A stretch of 64,000 nt of DNA from Vitrella brassicaformis CCMP3155 (taxonomy: Eukaryota > Protista > Chromerida), in the NCBI GenBank assembly GCA_001179505.1, contig CDMY01000282.1, positions 1 through 64,000 on the forward strand, written 5' to 3'. Made by a program: the position numbers and the translations under genes. Within the stretch, counting starts at the first letter, position 1, and every line of letters starts with the position of its first letter. Below the pieces are notes generated by a model. The model searched no databases, was not told the origin of the DNA, and worked only from the letters and a program-made list of their open reading frames with translations. Of the stretch, positions 36,200 to 47,011 are shown piece by piece.

Positions 36200-37841
36200 C
36201 TAGCTGGTCCTGACGATGACCCTGTTGCCGAGCTTGACGAGGGCTCTCCGTGCGGGCGAGTCGGGCAGCACCGACAGCCACTCCACCGCCTGCTGGGCGT
36301 GCCATCGCGCCAGGCTCTTGGTCCGCTCCAATCCCTGCACGCCATCAACACACACAGGAGAGGAGACCAGTGACGGACGGAGGGGTTTGCCGGAGTCGAT
36401 GTGATGCACGTGCTATGCTCGTCGGCCGACCTTGCTCCTCTCGAGTAGTTTCCTGGCGCGGTCCACATCACCCGGCTGCTTGAACTTGCGCCGTATCATG
36501 GCATTCAGCTCGGGATACTCCTCTGCTGCAAAGAGGATTGGCGCAGTGGCCTGGCCGTTGTTCAAGTCAGAACACGCCGGCTTGCCTGATCGACAGAGAC
36601 GACACGAGCAAGAAGAGACAAATGAGCACCCACTAAACGGACGGATGGGGGGGGTCCTCTGATTCGCAGCTTACCGAGGAGGTCAGCCGACTGAGTGAAG
36701 TCGAGCAGGTCGTCTACTATCTGGAAGGCCAAGCCAAGATGGTACCCATACTTCTCTGCCGCGACCGTCTCCTCACTGGTCGACGCGAAGCCTCCCAGCA
36801 GTGCCGCGCTTCTCGTCGAGCAGGCGATGAGGGAGGCTGTCTTCATGTAGGTCTTCTTCATGTACCTGCAAGTTTTGCCACAGAAATGCGAACCTTTCCG
36901 AAAGGATGGTAGACGGGCGTGATGTGCTGACCAGTCGAATGTTGTCAAATCGTCCGGCTCGGCCTTGGCCTGCATCACCTCGCCCGTCACAAGCGAATCA
37001 AGCGCATTGGCCATCGTCTCGACGACCTCCACGTTTCCAAGCTGAGCAAGGAGGACCGACGCTCGCGCGAGTAGGAAGTCTCCCGCGAGCACAGCCACTT
37101 TGTTGGAGTAGAGCTTGTGCACAGAATCACCGCCTCTCCTCGTCTCAGCGTCGTCCAGCACGTCGTCATGAATGAGCGACGCAGTGTGGATCATCTCTGT
37201 GATCTGACAGACAGACACCACACCACACCACAGCACACAAGGCGCATTCCCTCGCGTGTGCCGGCTCTCGTCTCCTCCCTCCCGTGTGTGTGTGTGCGTA
37301 CCTGGCCGAGCCGCCTTTGCTTGTCGTACACGTCAGCACTAGGCATGTCGTCTACATCCTTGTATGACACGCTGTCCCCCACATCCGCACCACTGTTGGC
37401 CGCGGCAGCAGCCGCCCGTGAGATGAGCATCACTATGGTCGGCCGGAACTTTTTGCCGCTCTTGAGGCTGAAGAAGTGGGAAGCCGCCATCTTCAGCACC
37501 GGGTGGTCCGTGTCCACCACTTCTCTGACCTGGTCAGCAAGGGACAGTAGGTCGTCACCGACATAGTCAAACGGATCAGGGCCGCTAGGCGGGCTGTTGA
37601 CATCGACGAGGGACTCCACTTTGGCATTGACAGGCTGAGCCGCAAGCACACGCTCGCGTGGGCGAAGCGCCAAGCGATGTGAAGAGCGGGCAGGGGAGGC
37701 GGCTTGAGGGGCGACAAAGCCTTCAGATGCCTCAAGCAGGGCGGAGAGGTCATCGTCATCGACAGGCCTCACGGAGAGCGCCCGGGAGAAGGTCAGGAAT
37801 GTGGTGCTGAGGGCCAGAAAAGAGAGCAGGGATGAAACCAT
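36200..37841 (-). CDS. SPS: Solanesyl/polyprenyl diphosphate synthase, probably plastid-targeted
   Basis: GKKFRPTIVML, EMIHTASLIHDDVLD (FARM), KVAVLAGDFLL, GEVMQ, KTASL, FQIVDDLLD (SARM), GKPACSDLNNGQATAPILFA. N-terminal signal peptide MVSSLLSFLALSTTFLTFSRA plus transit-like segment. Confidence 0.9.
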
Positions 37842-37997: not shown

Positions 37998-40175
<2,178 letters not shown>

Positions 40176-40969
40176 CTGATGTGCCTGCCGTGCATGTGTG
40201 CATCAGATATGTGGATGGGATGTGGGTGAGACATTGACATTGACCTTGTGTCTGTCATGCGCAAAGCACCGACCGACCTACCGACAGATCGATGGATGGA
40301 CGTGCTGCTGCTTCTTGAGTGAATGGCCGTGCAGGCAGTGGTCTGGTGTTCGTATGTGTCTTCCGTGGACATGGACACGCACGTGGAGTCGACGAGAGAG
40401 AAGATGAGTCACAGTCACCACCACCATCACCACCACCATCATCACTTTCAGACAGGAATGCACCGGTGTGTGTGTGCGCGATATGACTGACGCAGATGCG
40501 GAGGGCACCAAAGGTGCCCGAAGCTACCCGGGACACACCACAGACAGACAGACAGACAGACGGACGGAGAAAGCCACAGACAAAGAAAAGGAAGGCAAAA
40601 CAGAATGGCACACGGCGCTTGAGCGAAGAAAAGAAAACCTCGCTAGCTCAGAAATCCACATGACGGTGCGTTCCCCGGTAAAGACAGACAGACAGACAGA
40701 CAGACAGATAGAGAGGCGAAAGAGAAGCATCGGCCTTTTGCCAATGCCCGTCACGTCACGCGCCTGTTGCCCTTCCCCCCTCGATCTGCGTTATCTGATA
40801 CATAATTCATTGGCTGTACACATGAAAACCGCGACACACACACACACCCGCACGCCCACACCTGTGAGTGCGCCACTGCGCATACAGAGAGAGACCACAA
40901 AAAGGAAAACGAGCTCTGCCCATCCCGGCCCCCACGACCCTCTCGATCACATCATCCTCGTCTGTCAGC

Positions 40970-41462
40970 TCAGCTCAAGAGCAGCACGCGCCGGGGTCCG
41001 CCATCGCTGGGAAGGGGAAGAGGCAGGTCCTCGCCTTCACACCCTGGACGCACAATCAAACAAGCAAACAAACAAACAAACGTGCATCAATGCAGGAACA
41101 CCAGCCTCCTCACGCTAAAGTACCGAGTCGGGAGGGGCACGGGCGGCCCGATTGCTGCAGACGCCGGGGGCCACCATCGCTGGGACGGGGGAGGGGAAGG
41201 GGGTCGCCTTCGCACCCTGCAAACACACACACACGGATGGCACACTCGACAAACCTCCTTACTGGGGTGCACGTGTGTCTGGCTTACCGAGTCGAGAGGG
41301 GCAAGGGCGAGTGGTCCCCGGGCCTCGTAGCCGTCGGAGGCGATCAGGGATGGGCCGCGGCACTGGGCCTGGCCTGTTCGTGTCACCCTCGGGGACAATG
41401 GCGGTCGCCACTGCGAGAAGGCAGACGGTCACTCCGAGCAGGAAAGCCGAGAAACGAGCCAT
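40970..41462 (-). CDS. Small secreted repeat-peptide precursor (113 aa, 3 exons)
   Basis: Exons 41462-41288, 41216-41124 and 41043-40970 with GT-AG phase-1 introns give MARFSAFLLGVTVCLLAVATA-IVPEGDTNRPGPVPRPIPDRLRRLRGPGTTRPCPSRLGCEGDPLPLPRPSDGGPRRLQQSGRPCPSRLGCEGEDLPLPLPSDGGPRRVLLLS*. Confidence 0.75.
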
Positions 41463-41536
41463 CTTTCTCGACGCGGACGGAAGCTGGAGAGCGAGGGGGC
41501 AGCTGGCGAGGGTTCAGGAGGAAATAGCCAGCGAAA

Positions 41537-41878
41537 ATGACCGAGAATGACCGAATGAGGTTTTTATACAGTGTACAGTACCAGAAGGATCGCGGAACGG
41601 TTCTCGACTTTTTCCAGGAGCTGGCTCCCTCCCGTCTCCCAGCCCGTATGGCGTCATCGAGCGCACGTTCGTCGCAGTACTTGCCTGAGGAAGTGCCCTC
41701 TGCCAATCCACCACCGTCAGCAGGAGTGCCAGGCCTCTCCCGTGCCGTGCCCAGCCTCAGAGCAAGCCCCAGAACCGTCGTCACGCCCACTCCGAGGGCC
41801 TTATCGAACATCCAGAGGGTGGGCATGCAATGCATGGCAATGGCTGGGCGAGCCACCGTTGACCCACACATGTGGTGA
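41537..41878 (+). CDS. Possible hypothetical protein (first exon only)
   Basis: Open frame MTENDRMRFLYSVQYQKDRGTVLDFFQELAP... diverging from the secreted-peptide gene. Downstream exons unresolved. Confidence 0.25.
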   Translation: MTENDRMRFLYSVQYQKDRGTVLDFFQELAPSRLPARMASSSARSSQYLPEEVPSANPPPSAGVPGLSRAVPSLRASPRTVVTPTPRALSNIQRVGMQCMAMAGRATVDPHMW

Positions 41879-42483
41879 CTGTTGTCTGTGCAGCCGGAGA
41901 GGCGGCCTCAGCACCGGCTGCCGGGGGCGCCCGACACCGAGGCGTGGCTCAAGTTCTTCTGTCGAGGGCTGATTGCCACCCTGACTGTGCTTACGATGTT
42001 CCTTGGGGGATGGCTCTTGATGAAACTGATGACAGCTGGACGGAACTAAGTCGTCTTGCATGCCGTGTGCTGAGGGGTAGCAGAGCCATTCATTCGATTG
42101 CCAATAGGCCGTCAGTGAGTGCACTGACTGACAAGAGAGCGATTCAGACAGACAGACAGACAGACAGGCACGCACGCAGACATACACGCAGACAGACATA
42201 TATGGTGTCTTGGGTCGGTCGGGGAGGGGAATTAGCTAGTAGGGCATAGCATGTACTCACGCACACCGTGGATGGATGTGGATGCAGGTCACTCACTCAC
42301 TGACTGACTCATCAATCATTCCAAGTCACAAATAAGACTGACTGACTGAATCAATCAATATACTTATTGGGTGGATGGGATGGATGGGTGGGTGGGTGGG
42401 TGGGATGGGGTGGGATGACCTCACCCCCGTCCGTTCGGGACGCGTGTACCCTCTCGTCTACTGCTTACGTCTCGCGGCCGGCC

Positions 42484-42491
42484 TATATAAA
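42484..42491 (+). promoter_or_regulatory. TATA-box-like element (TATATAAA)
   Basis: Canonical TATAWAWR match in a GC-rich context (gcctatataaagc). No clear downstream CDS. Confidence 0.3.
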
Positions 42492-43800
42492 GCTCCCTCA
42501 CGTAGCACACAGGCAGGCAGGCAGGCAGGCAGACAAAGAGAGAGACGCACACACGCACCCACCATTATCCAGCCGCAGCTCGGCAAACGGCGGGGACCAC
42601 TGAGCAAGTTCACATCCGCCCGCTCGCCCAGGGACTTCATTCATTCATTCATTCGACAGCCACTGAAAAACTGCTTTCTCTGTCTTGTCTTGTCTGTGGT
42701 TGACCTTACAAAGGTCCTCCCTCACATGCGCACACACAACAAAAGGTTCTTCGCTCCCCTCCAGCCCATGGCCTCGCCTTCCCACGTTTCTGTTGCTGGC
42801 CTTATCTGAAGGCAGAGAGACAGCCAGACAGACGGCAGGGCAAGGCAAGACCGACAGCCATTCACCACACAGGCAGAGGCAGGCAGCCAGGGAGGGGGAC
42901 GTGGGGAGTGGGAGACGGGGAGTCGAGGGCAGCAGCAGACAGCAGCAGACACCGGCATACGACGGACGGACACGCCGTTCATGTCATGCACTCGCTCAGT
43001 CGTTGGTTGATGCGATGCACACGCGGCAAAAGCCAGCTCACAAAGAAAGCACTTCTTGATTGATAAAAAAGGGCGGACGGACGGACTTCCGGGAGGCACA
43101 CGATAGATAGATAATTAGAGATATGGGGGGTTACATTAAACAGACAGACTCAGACAGACACGGTGGGTGCGGTGCATACCATTCATCTCATCCATACAGC
43201 CGAGCCGCCACGGAGAGGGGGAGGGGGGGAGAGGAAAAACATACAGACACCGAGTACCAGCAGCAGCAGCAGCAGCAGGTGAGGGGACACACACACGTCT
43301 TCCCAAATCGATGAATAAACAGCAGCGCCCGGGTGTTTTCATGTGTGTGTGTGTGTGTGTGTGTATGGCGGCTACAGCCCTCGCTCGCGCGCTAGGCCCT
43401 GTACACGCAACACGGTTCGCAAACAGCAGGCAGCCACGGAGATAGATAAAGACCCCCTCAGCCAGCCAGCCCCTCATTGAATGCATTGCAATCACGGACG
43501 CGCACATCTCTCTTTTGGGGACGCATTGGTCTGTCTGCCTGCATGCCTACGTACTTACTCTACCAGGTACTTACGTACCCATTCACAAAGAAGACACTCG
43601 TCGTATATACAACAGCGCCCGCCCTCCCGCCCTCCATCCATCCATCCATCCCACCATCCCACCACCCACCACACACACGCACAGAGAGAGGGGGGGCGGG
43701 GGCAGGGGAGGGAGGGGAAGGGGGGCCGCCGCAGAACCCCAAAAGCTCACGACAGGTAAGGAACAGCCATTGGTCTCTGTCCGCTTGATCGTTGGTTGCT

Positions 43801-45404
43801 TCAATCGTTGTTGCTGCCTCCGAAGAGCATGAGGATGAACAGGAATATGTTGATGATGTCAATATACAGCGCCTGACACACACGCACACCCACACCCACA
43901 CCGCATTCACTGGTAAGCCTGTCGACCGTGTCCTGTGTGTGCTGTGCTGAGCTGGCTGGAGGGACTGACCAGTGCTGCGAAGACATAGTCGTCGACGGAG
44001 AACTCGAATGTCCGGTGTTTGCCTCCGACCAGCAGCTGCGTGTCGTAGACGAGGTAGAGCGAGAAGATGAGGGCCCCCGCGGCGCCGTACACCTTCTGCA
44101 GGATGGGCACGGTAGGGATGAAGAAGGCCGCTATTATGCCAAACAACAGCAGCACTATCAGCGCCACAAACAGGTAACCTCCTTTGGCTGCAGACACAGA
44201 CACACACGGACAGAAAGAGAGGTAGAGAGCATAAGACAGCATCGTGCCGGGCAGCACGATGATGGATCCGATCCGATCCGATCCTCTTGGTTGTGTTTGT
44301 ACTTACAGGTGAAGTCGATCTTGGTTTGTATGGCGAATAGCGTGCATGCGATGAAGACCCCCGCGGTGATGCCGACGGCTACGCCCACCGCCGTTATGTC
44401 ATACTGCGTCGTCACCACCTGCACACACAATGAATGCCATGTGTTGCGAGGAAGGGAGGCACGATTGATGTATGTCGTTCTGGTGCCTACTTACGCCAAC
44501 TAGGAAGCCCTGTGCGGCCGTGAAGAGCAGCAGCAACACATAGTTGAGCGGGAAGGTTCGCGCAGGGCCGGAGCAGCACGACAGAGCTGAACACACACAC
44601 ACAGATACAGATACAGACACAGACACAGACACAAGAGGTGGGTGCATCACACGGACGGGATGTGAAAGAAAGAGCTGCTCCGGTCGGTGTGTGCTATTTT
44701 GCGTACCGATGAGGGTTCCGAAGGTGAGCACGAGTGCCAGGATGAACAGCCAGCTGTTGTTCGTCAGGAAGGTCTTCGCCCCGGGCGCATAAAGGATGGC
44801 ACAGCCGATGCCAAAGGTGATCTGAACACACACGCAACGCAACAAACCAACACATCAGTTAGCACAGGTTGCCGCTTCCAGTCAGTCTGCCCGTCTGTCT
44901 GCCCATCTTGGTGCCAGCCACGTGTGGTCCTTTCCCTCCCTCCCTCCCTCCCTTCCTCCCTCCCTCTCTCACCAGCAGTTGTATGCTGAGGACAGTGTAG
45001 ACCTTGCGGATGAAGCCGTGCCTGATCTCAATCGGCAGGTCGGCGTGCATCATGGTCCCGCCGCCATACGCCGTCCCCCCATACCCACCGCCGTACGCGC
45101 CCACATCGCCATAACCGCCACCGCCACCGCCTGCATAGCCAACAGCCGTGTTGTTGCCCTGATAGGCTACTCCACCCGCTACCACAGGGCCGTGGACGAC
45201 GGGTGAGGGGATGGCACCCATCGGGTATGCTCCCTGGCCGTAGTTGGTGCCGTATGCGGTGGTCTGGACGGGCTGGGAGGAGGTGTTCTGATAGGGTGGC
45301 TGGGTGGAGGTCTGGCCGTAGTTGGCGGCGGGGGGGTGGTTGCCGTAGCTGGGCGGCTGGACGGCATATGGCTGTTGCGGTAACCCTTTCTCCGGGTCAT
45401 ACAT
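43801..45404 (-). CDS. Bax inhibitor-1 / TMBIM (lifeguard/GRINA-like) membrane protein
   Basis: Pro/Tyr/Gly-rich N-terminus, then IRHGFIRKVYTVLSIQL, FPLNYVLLLLFT, TLFAIQTKIDFT, SLYLVYDTQLLVGGKH, SVDDYVFAAL, LYIDIINIFLFIL. Confidence 0.92.
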
Positions 45405-45678: not shown

Positions 45679-47011
45679 ATGGTTTTGACCGAAGCTGGCA
45701 CCCCGGCTCTTGTCGCCCTGGCAGTATGCTCATTCATCGTCACGTGGGCGGTCTCTTTTGCCTCCTGCACTGTGCTGTCACGCACGCCAGAGCTGCTAAA
45801 GGAACGGCTCAAGGGCGTCTTGTGCTTCGGCGTCGCCGCCATGCTGAGTGACGTGTTCCTGGTGAGATCTGCAGATAGAGTAGACAACTACCCGGCCAGA
45901 TCCTCACTGTCTGGCTGTCTGTTGTGTGTGTCTGTGTGCGGTGCGTGTGTGTTATGCTGCAGCACATCATTCCTCACGTGTACGGCGATATGGCGAAGCT
46001 TGATAGGTAACGAACGGACAAGAACAGACAGAGATGGGAGTGGTGTGTGTGTGTTTGCCGGCATGCCATGGGTGGTCTGTCTGTCTGCGCAGCGCCAGTG
46101 TGGAGGAGTCGATGGTGACCAACGGGGTCGGCTTCCTTCTCGGAATCGCCGTTGCCCATGGCCTCGACATCCTCCTGCAGGCCTACCACGTTGAGCCCAG
46201 CTCACCACATGGCGAAGAGCAGCAACACGGTGCCGACACCAGCGATGCACAGCACGACAGTGTCGGTGAGAAGGTCTCTTTGCGACTGCGGGCGACGGCA
46301 AAGGGAGAGGCGGAAGAGGGCGAGGATAGAGAATTGGTCAGCAGGGAGGGTGGCGGTGGTGCCAGGCGGGCCGCGTTGCCATTATGGAGGGTGCTGAAGC
46401 CTGTGGCTGCTCTCAATCTCATGTCTGACCTGCTGCACAACGGTACGGTGAGCAGGGGACTTAGTGATGTCATTCATGTCAATACATCAATAAACGGCAC
46501 CATGTATGTCATCGCAGGTCTCGACGGGATGAGCATCGCGGTGTCATTTCAGACCAACCGGCGCATCGGTCTGTCCACATCGCTGGCCATCCTGGCGCAT
46601 GAAGTCGCGCAGGAATTCGCAGACTTCGCTATACTCGTCCACTCAGGTACGTTCGTTCACAGCTTGCCAAGCCAGGAACCACACACACTCCTCCTTATCT
46701 CTTTCCCTCCCTCCCTCCCTCTAGGCCTGTCGCCGTATCAGGCACTCGTCCTCAACGTGGCGGTGTCTTTTTCTGCCATCGTCGGAGGTGCTCTCACCCT
46801 CCTGCTCGGGGCCGGTCTCTCTGAGTTGTGGAAAGACTTCCTGCTGTGTTTCGCCGGCGGCAACTTCCTCTATATTTCTCTGTTCGAGATCCTCCCCGAG
46901 ACGGTGACGGCCACGACGGCCGGCGGAGGTGATCAGCGAGGCGGCCAGCGTGTTGCGGGCTTCCTGCTGGGCTTCCTGTGTCTGTATGGCGTGCGGTGGA
47001 TGGAGCAGTAG
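45679..47011 (+). CDS. ZIP-family (LIV-1-like) metal transporter
   Basis: AAMLSDVFL, FLLGIA, His/acidic loop, LNLMSDLLHNG-LDGMSIAVSF, LAILAHEVAQEFADFAILVHSG, LLCFAGGNFLYISLFEILPE. Confidence 0.9.

Follow-up and report, generated by a model that had tools for sequence, protein, structure and literature searches.

An orphan three-exon gene of Vitrella brassicaformis predicted to encode a secreted repeat precursor with candidate RRL cleavage sites

A small minus-strand gene of Vitrella brassicaformis CCMP3155, lying in the 64,000-nucleotide window (positions 1 to 64,000 of contig CDMY01000282.1, the whole stretch of DNA analysed here), encodes a 113-amino-acid product that is best explained, with a rough probability of 0.45, as an orphan, selected and secreted repeat protein whose Arg-Arg-Leu (RRL) sites would be cut to give loop peptides. 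The internal repeats and the orphan status were observed directly, while secretion, loop closure and cleavage are predicted with graded strength from the leader, the codon pattern of the duplicated exons and the proteases encoded in the genome.

Gene model, repeat architecture and selection

Sequence reading, recomputed by script, gave three exons separated by two GT-AG introns of 71 and 80 nt, and the exon total of 342 nt equals 113 codons plus the stop. Exon 1 (41288..41462, minus strand, as are all features of this gene; 175 nt) carries the ATG, the predicted signal peptide and repeat unit 1, and ends with RPCPSRL plus the G of a split codon. No further upstream in-frame start was found for it, and its translation is 100% identical to residues 1-58 of a public protein, P0001. 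Intron 1 (41217..41287; 71 nt, GTAAGC..TTGCAG) is followed by exon 2 (41124..41216; 93 nt), which holds repeat unit 2 (CEGD..PRRLQQSGRPCPSRL), and intron 2 (41044..41123; 80 nt, GTACTT..GTCCAG), containing an (ACAA)n microsatellite, is followed by exon 3 (40970..41043; 74 nt including TGA), which holds a truncated repeat unit 3 (CEGED..PRRVLLLS). Both introns are in phase 1 and a Gly codon is rebuilt at each splice junction. The three-exon model of the initial annotation was thus confirmed by exon-wise translation and by the identical public protein, while its description of three phase-1 exons stands in full for exon 2 only, which is symmetric (phase 1-1), exon 1 merely ending and exon 3 merely starting in phase 1. 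We located an intron of the neighbouring TrpRS-like gene by frame continuity across two joined exons, and this homology-anchored intron is 70 nt in length (GTAGGT..TTGCAG); given that the two introns described here are of the same style, they appear typical for the Vitrella genome.

The protein consists of the leader and three units of 38, 31 and 23 residues, the last being truncated. Exons 2 and 3 both open with GGTGYGAAGGCGA, and exons 1 and 2 both close with CGCCCNTGCCCCTCNCGACTCG followed by GTA, so that direct reading agreed with the shared exon starts and ends claimed earlier; RPCPSRLGCEG..PSDGGPRR was likewise seen twice, both in the exon-wise translations and in P0001. The similarity of the exon segments (z=10.2 and 6.8 versus shuffles) bears out an exon-level internal duplication and is far above chance. 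In addition, the part of exon 1 past the signal peptide is a divergent third copy of the unit (residues 22-59 versus 60-90, z=7.5, reached in 0 of 2000 shuffles), the similarity of which persists (z=3.8) with the identical RPCPSRLG tail removed; this copy is older than the others, and its head has Pro in place of Cys. Conserved elements of the unit are EG[DE], PxPxP, RR[L/V] and RPCPSRLG followed by C, with PRR at the end of units 2 and 3, and the stretch after RRL is the most variable in each unit (RGPGTT, QQSG and LLLS).

Cysteines occupy positions 14, 54, 60, 85 and 91, and the four within the mature part form two C-x5-C pairs (54/60 and 85/91). The first CPSRLGC motif (Cys54 to Cys60; 41212..41303) is split by intron 1 and the second (Cys85 to Cys91; 41039..41139) by intron 2, and each exon junction therefore builds a heptapeptide that would be able to close as a disulfide loop. 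Pro, Leu, Arg and Gly prevail in the composition of the protein (18% Pro, zero Lys). The mature part is probably largely disordered, with which the low-confidence ESM Atlas model of the 113-residue sequence (pTM 0.15, pLDDT 0.54) is consistent.

The copy families detected by a repeat finder are spaced 173 and 164 nt apart, and the intron lengths are not multiples of three. Since neither spacing is divisible by three, a single frame for all copies exists only in the spliced minus-strand reading. Introns 1 and 2 retain a residual similarity to each other (z=3.5, or z=2.3 without the splice-site ends). These features show that tandem duplication produced the repeats, the copied module being about 164-173 bp long and comprising part of an exon and one intron, and that this duplication is old, with a dS of about 0.6 and introns nearly randomised. 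Each copy stayed in frame because exon 2 is symmetric, as in other genes grown by symmetric-phase exon duplication, in which a phase 1-1 exon is likewise copied in tandem together with its intron and the frame is kept; the mechanism is a textbook one, and nothing is unusual here beyond the very small size of the gene.

We compared the duplicates codon-wise, using 18 codons from the starts of exons 2 and 3 and 7 codons from the ends of exons 1 and 2. Third codon positions account for 10 of the 13 nucleotide differences (binomial P=0.0016), and nine codons differ synonymously and three non-synonymously. A Nei-Gojobori count on the concatenated homologous codon pairs gave pS 0.419 and pN 0.075 (dN/dS of about 0.13; Fisher P=0.0008). 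This pattern indicates that the spliced minus-strand frame is truly coding and that it has been under purifying selection since the duplication. Selection on the Cys and RR residues, which had been set beforehand as a refutation test, came out favourable as judged between the paralogous repeats; given that the gene has no orthologues, conservation was judged only among the three paralogous units of one gene. Taken on these counts, the gene is very probably real and under selection. An antisense ORF (40868-41527, plus strand, 219 aa) was considered and rejected: it runs through both introns, and because the 173- and 164-nt spacings put the duplicates into different frames, it cannot explain their codon-wise conservation. 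GC content by codon position was also discarded as coding evidence, since Pro, Arg and Gly codons dominate and shifted frames look alike.

Leader, RRL sites and maturation

The predicted signal peptide covers residues 1-21 (41400..41462) and comprises an n-region MAR, a hydrophobic core with a Kyte-Doolittle maximum of 2.84 at residue 11 (9-residue windows) and a heuristic cleavage site, the -3/-1 rule being satisfied after residue 21 (Ala-Thr-Ala before Ile). The signal-peptide-like N-terminus claimed from the sequence is thus supported, by heuristic means, through both core and cleavage rule. Acidic residues follow directly behind the predicted cut. Acidic residues straight after a leader speak against a bipartite plastid transit peptide, and such a transit peptide is accordingly argued against here. 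No C-terminal retention signal or GPI-type signal was found in the 113-residue protein. We infer that the leader is a cleaved signal peptide which brings the product into the secretory pathway, and the product is probably soluble and secreted.

Behind this leader, RRL site 1 lies at residues 43-45 (41328..41336; codons CGA CGG CTA), where RLRR corresponds to the furin-type R-X-R-R and RRLR fits RxLR, and RRL site 2 lies at residues 76-78 (41158..41166; codons CGG CGT CTG), where RRLQQ fits RxLxQ. A degenerate third site, RRV, is present at residues 107-109 (40985..40993; codons CGG CGC GTG). Between units 1 and 2 all three codons of Arg-Arg-Leu differ, every change being synonymous. Toxoplasma ASP5 strictly requires R-R-L at P3-P1, leaves P1' and P2' free and allows sites near either end (PMC4764566). 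The earlier reading of RRL as a TEXEL-type motif agrees with this rule, RRLRG (residues 43-47) and RRLQQ (residues 76-80) both satisfying RRLxx and RRV of unit 3 failing it.

The genome also encodes a candidate enzyme. On contig C688, a 388-aa open frame (locus L016:1468-2631, minus strand of the locus) matches Plasmodium plasmepsin V (PM V) with E=4e-39 (PDB 4zl4 and 8tyf), as against 3e-7 for other aspartic proteases and pepsins, and it contains the DTG and DSG motifs, a PM V-type Cys-rich insert and a YxEGSQ flap. These features identify a PM V/ASP5-clade protease in this free-living alga, the C688 locus being one of about a dozen pepsin-family loci (~12) in the genome. In models of ASP5, the P3 Arg is clamped by a Glu and a Gln (PMC4764566), and the aligned Glu and Gln of the Vitrella protease would be the same clamps.

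In the mechanism that we propose, residues 22-45 (24 aa, ending in RRL) would form a pro-region comparable to the diatom RXL domain and to the N-terminal pieces of PEXEL and TEXEL proteins, and the Vitrella plasmepsin V/ASP5-type aspartic protease would cut after Leu45 and Leu78 in the ER or Golgi. Two peptides would be set free in this way, about 33-35 residues in length and carrying a single C-x5-C loop apiece; the signalling, antimicrobial or adhesion role that the initial annotation suggested for such peptides is speculative. We put this assignment of enzyme and products forward tentatively, at somewhat less than even odds. In its favour, RRL was kept through synonymous changes with a variable stretch behind it, the pattern of a cleavage site and its spacer; the matching protease is encoded in the genome; and a leader followed by 24 residues ending in RRL matches the layout of the diatom RXL domain. 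Set against it, ASP5 would leave the RRV of unit 3 uncut, and RRL is statistically unsurprising. Among composition-matched shuffles of the mature part 29% contained at least one RRL, and among single-unit shuffles 8.7% did, so that RRL alone is not beyond chance in this Arg- and Leu-rich protein, and since both RRL sites go back to a single ancestral site, they do not count as independent evidence.

The same statistics bear on the possibility that the protein acts intact, as a small, secreted, disordered and proline-rich repeat protein, e.g., a component of the cell wall, the sporangium wall or a surface matrix, with RRL being incidental and the CPSRLGC loops and RR being conserved as a binding or structural surface. 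The frequencies of RRL and RR inside composition-matched expectation would fit such a role, as would the 18% Pro, the PxPxP motifs and the absence of a predicted fold. Unit 3, moreover, keeps RR though its Leu has changed to Val, and selection on RR may therefore have a cause unrelated to an RRL protease. By contrast, the most variable stretch sitting right behind RRL, the retention of RRL through synonymous changes and the matching protease in the genome are not what an incidental RRL would lead one to expect. We regard an intact role as unlikely on balance, while of all alternatives it survives best.

Cleavage may instead follow the dibasic Arg-Arg, carried out by a subtilisin-type convertase of the Kex2/furin type as in fungal Kex2-processed repeat proteins (KEPs) and animal prohormones. 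By definition, KEPs are secreted and give 4 or more fragments, each 2 aa or longer, on KR/RR cutting (PMC6339444). Cutting at RR in silico gave four fragments (23, 33, 31 and 5 residues) whose ends are uniform, ..PSDGGP(RR), which is within the KEP fragment rule, the signal peptide being a heuristic call. All three units carry RR, encoded differently in each; RLRR at the first site agrees with the furin-type R-X-[KR]-R; and the genome contains well over 30 S8 subtilase loci. However, the kexin/furin P-domain (PF01483) was not found in the genome by an exon-wise search, which does not prove its absence, and at least one RR occurred in 93% of shuffles. In addition, only two full CPSRLGC cores are present, the first fragment being a divergent copy without the loop, and this is under the usual KEP threshold of at least three core repeats. 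Dibasic processing is thus rather improbable, and the RRL cut described above is the reading we prefer.

Annotation, orphan status and genomic surroundings

A search with the open frame of exon 1 retrieved the identical 113-aa protein (P0001) from NCBI, UniRef and EukProt, where it is listed as 'unnamed protein product [Vitrella brassicaformis CCMP3155]'. The gene model is therefore already public as an uncharacterised product, and the expectation of the initial annotation that gene callers would probably miss it proved wrong. The published Vitrella annotation was made by Augustus with RNA-seq intron hints, and ab initio models were also kept (PMC4501334). Given that the pipeline retained such models, annotation alone is no proof of expression.

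This raises the alternative that the locus is never, or no longer, expressed, the ab initio model then describing a duplicated ORF that is silent or decaying. RNA-seq support was reported for 18,240 of the 23,503 predicted Vitrella genes, leaving about 22% without it (PMC4501334), and the gene is a singleton orphan, which would fit this alternative. A dN/dS of about 0.13 over a dS of about 0.6, by contrast, demands long-lasting selection on the frame, and the start and stop codons are intact, as are the splice sites (4 of 4). The gene also fills a gap of its own and stands alone there, its neighbours being the plus-strand TrpRS-like gene, with its end near 40083, and a minus-strand gene that lies beyond about 43.9 kb, and a TATA-like TATAAAAA element (41561..41568, minus strand), possibly a core promoter, lies about 99 nt upstream of the ATG. 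A silent locus is thus very improbable. Least credible of all is an uncleaved signal anchor, which would make the product a small type II membrane protein with its repeats displayed in the lumen or outside: residues 4-23 do form a run of about 20 consecutive, mostly hydrophobic residues (about 18-20), but the small-x-small site A-T-A before I is a good one, the core is broken by Gly, Thr and Cys, and a single positive charge precedes it.

Relatives were sought exon by exon and then with the whole of P0001. Searches of the own genome covered the 72.7-Mb assembly of 1064 contigs, in which no paralogue was detected by a DNA-level search, by an exon-wise protein search or by a degenerate CPSRLG+GT pattern, the count of the latter being equal to that of a backwards-read control. 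Both the 5.8-billion word search and an exhaustive HMMER search of 1.84 billion representatives returned, as a true relative, only the protein itself. Three weak matches that the exhaustive search also gave (P0002-P0004) proved to be tandem-repeat proteins with scores from summed weak alignments, and they were rejected as relatives because neither the Cys pair nor RR is kept. None of the 600 pattern matches from a scan of metagenome contigs was confirmed. No Pfam family was hit at E values up to 10, the best PDB match (E=0.28) was not significant, and the ESM Atlas yielded no usable feature match, its structure neighbours all lying below TM 0.4. An Rfam search of 38-46 kb found nothing. The protein is thus a species-only orphan, with no paralogue, no relative anywhere searched, no Pfam family and no confident fold.

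The surroundings of the gene are rich in simple repeats. Dense tetranucleotide microsatellites, (GGGA)n, (ACAG)n, (AGAC)n, (ACAA)n, (CAGA)n, (TGGG)n and (CAGG)n, extend over the non-coding DNA of 40049-43902; many lie within the 2.4 kb upstream of the gene, in which no convincing ORF was found. A 16-nt inverted repeat of 81% complementarity pairs the 3' flank (40931-40946) with the end of exon 1 (41292-41307, CCCTTGCCCCTCTCGA) and is probably due to chance. On the plus strand, the TrpRS-like gene occupies 38070-40083 with its 70-nt intron at 38529-38598, and its C-terminal part looks by eye like an EMAP-II/tRNA-binding domain that is putatively fused to the synthetase. Beyond it, a minus-strand ORF (36562-37236) with ..LIHDDVLDD.. 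and ..QIVDDLLD.. is by eye a putative trans-polyprenyl diphosphate synthase. The upstream neighbour (43907-45404, minus strand) has several exons, an N-terminus rich in Pro, Gln, Tyr and Gly, and membrane segments that resemble TMBIM/Bax inhibitors by eye, and a plus-strand ORF at 46034-47011 contains ..AILAHEVAQEFADFAILV.., a ZIP metal-transporter-like signature by eye.

Comparison with known processing systems

The closest likeness in layout is to the RXL propeptides of diatom silaffins, cingulins and silicanin-1, which also belong to free-living algae of the same supergroup, and silaffin precursors are repeat polyproteins as well. The sequences share no similarity, and diatom RXL proteins are biosilica-associated with a Lys/Ser-rich mature part, whereas the 113-residue protein is without Lys and without Ser/Lys-rich silica-forming segments. 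Vitrella is not known to be silicified. The diatom RXL domain consists of about 30 aa that follow the signal peptide, end in RRL and are proteolytically removed (30 aa in Sin1), by a protease that is still unidentified (PMC5525289). Residues 22-45 of the Vitrella protein, 24 aa in length and ending in RRL, have this layout.

TEXEL/ASP5 and PEXEL/plasmepsin V substrates likewise enter the secretory pathway, and both Vitrella RRL sites fit the strict ASP5 P3-P1 rule. In PEXEL proteins the pentamer is expected shortly after the ER signal. When compared with the PEXEL form RxLxE/Q/D, site 2 (RRLQQ) fits but lies 55 aa past the predicted cut, while site 1 (RRLRG) lies at a fitting distance, 22 aa past it, but has Gly at position 5. 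TEXEL and PEXEL license an effector; in Vitrella, the RRL sites instead separate tandem repeats, with RRV as a third site. Vitrella brassicaformis is a free-living alga (PMC4501334), and there is therefore no host cell and no export, unlike the case of PEXEL and TEXEL proteins.

Fungal KEPs, such as the precursors of alpha-factor and ustiloxin, likewise combine a signal peptide with tandem, near-identical cores between dibasic sites, but they stem from a different lineage, share no homology and are not matched in number by the two full cores and one divergent unit of the Vitrella gene. As in oomycete RxLR effectors, RRLR (residues 43-46) is found about 25 residues or less from the predicted signal-peptide cut, and the RxLR motif is itself subject to proteolytic processing (PMC11754927). 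The 113-residue protein is without the EER motif and without a WY or effector domain, and its organism is no pathogen, so that the RxLR likeness is a motif resemblance only.

Taken alone, this gene is one among thousands of uncharacterised Vitrella orphan genes, and it has grown by exon duplication in a textbook manner. What makes it valuable is its use as a small and clean test substrate: a predicted signal peptide leads into a putative 24-residue pro-region with RRL at its end, a second RRL stands between two near-identical 30-residue cores, and the organism possesses a plasmepsin V/ASP5-type protease yet has no host to export into. It is conceivable, albeit doubtful, that P0001 is a substrate of a pre-parasitic PM V/ASP5-type protease, for which cleavage at RRL in the ER or Golgi would be ordinary maturation of pro-peptides and polyproteins and which the PEXEL/TEXEL export of parasites would have re-used later. 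If the RRL sites are cut, the gene would help to reveal the role of this protease family before parasitism, and the processing of apicomplexan PEXEL/TEXEL, oomycete RxLR and diatom RXL proteins would be linked as one old secretory maturation system.
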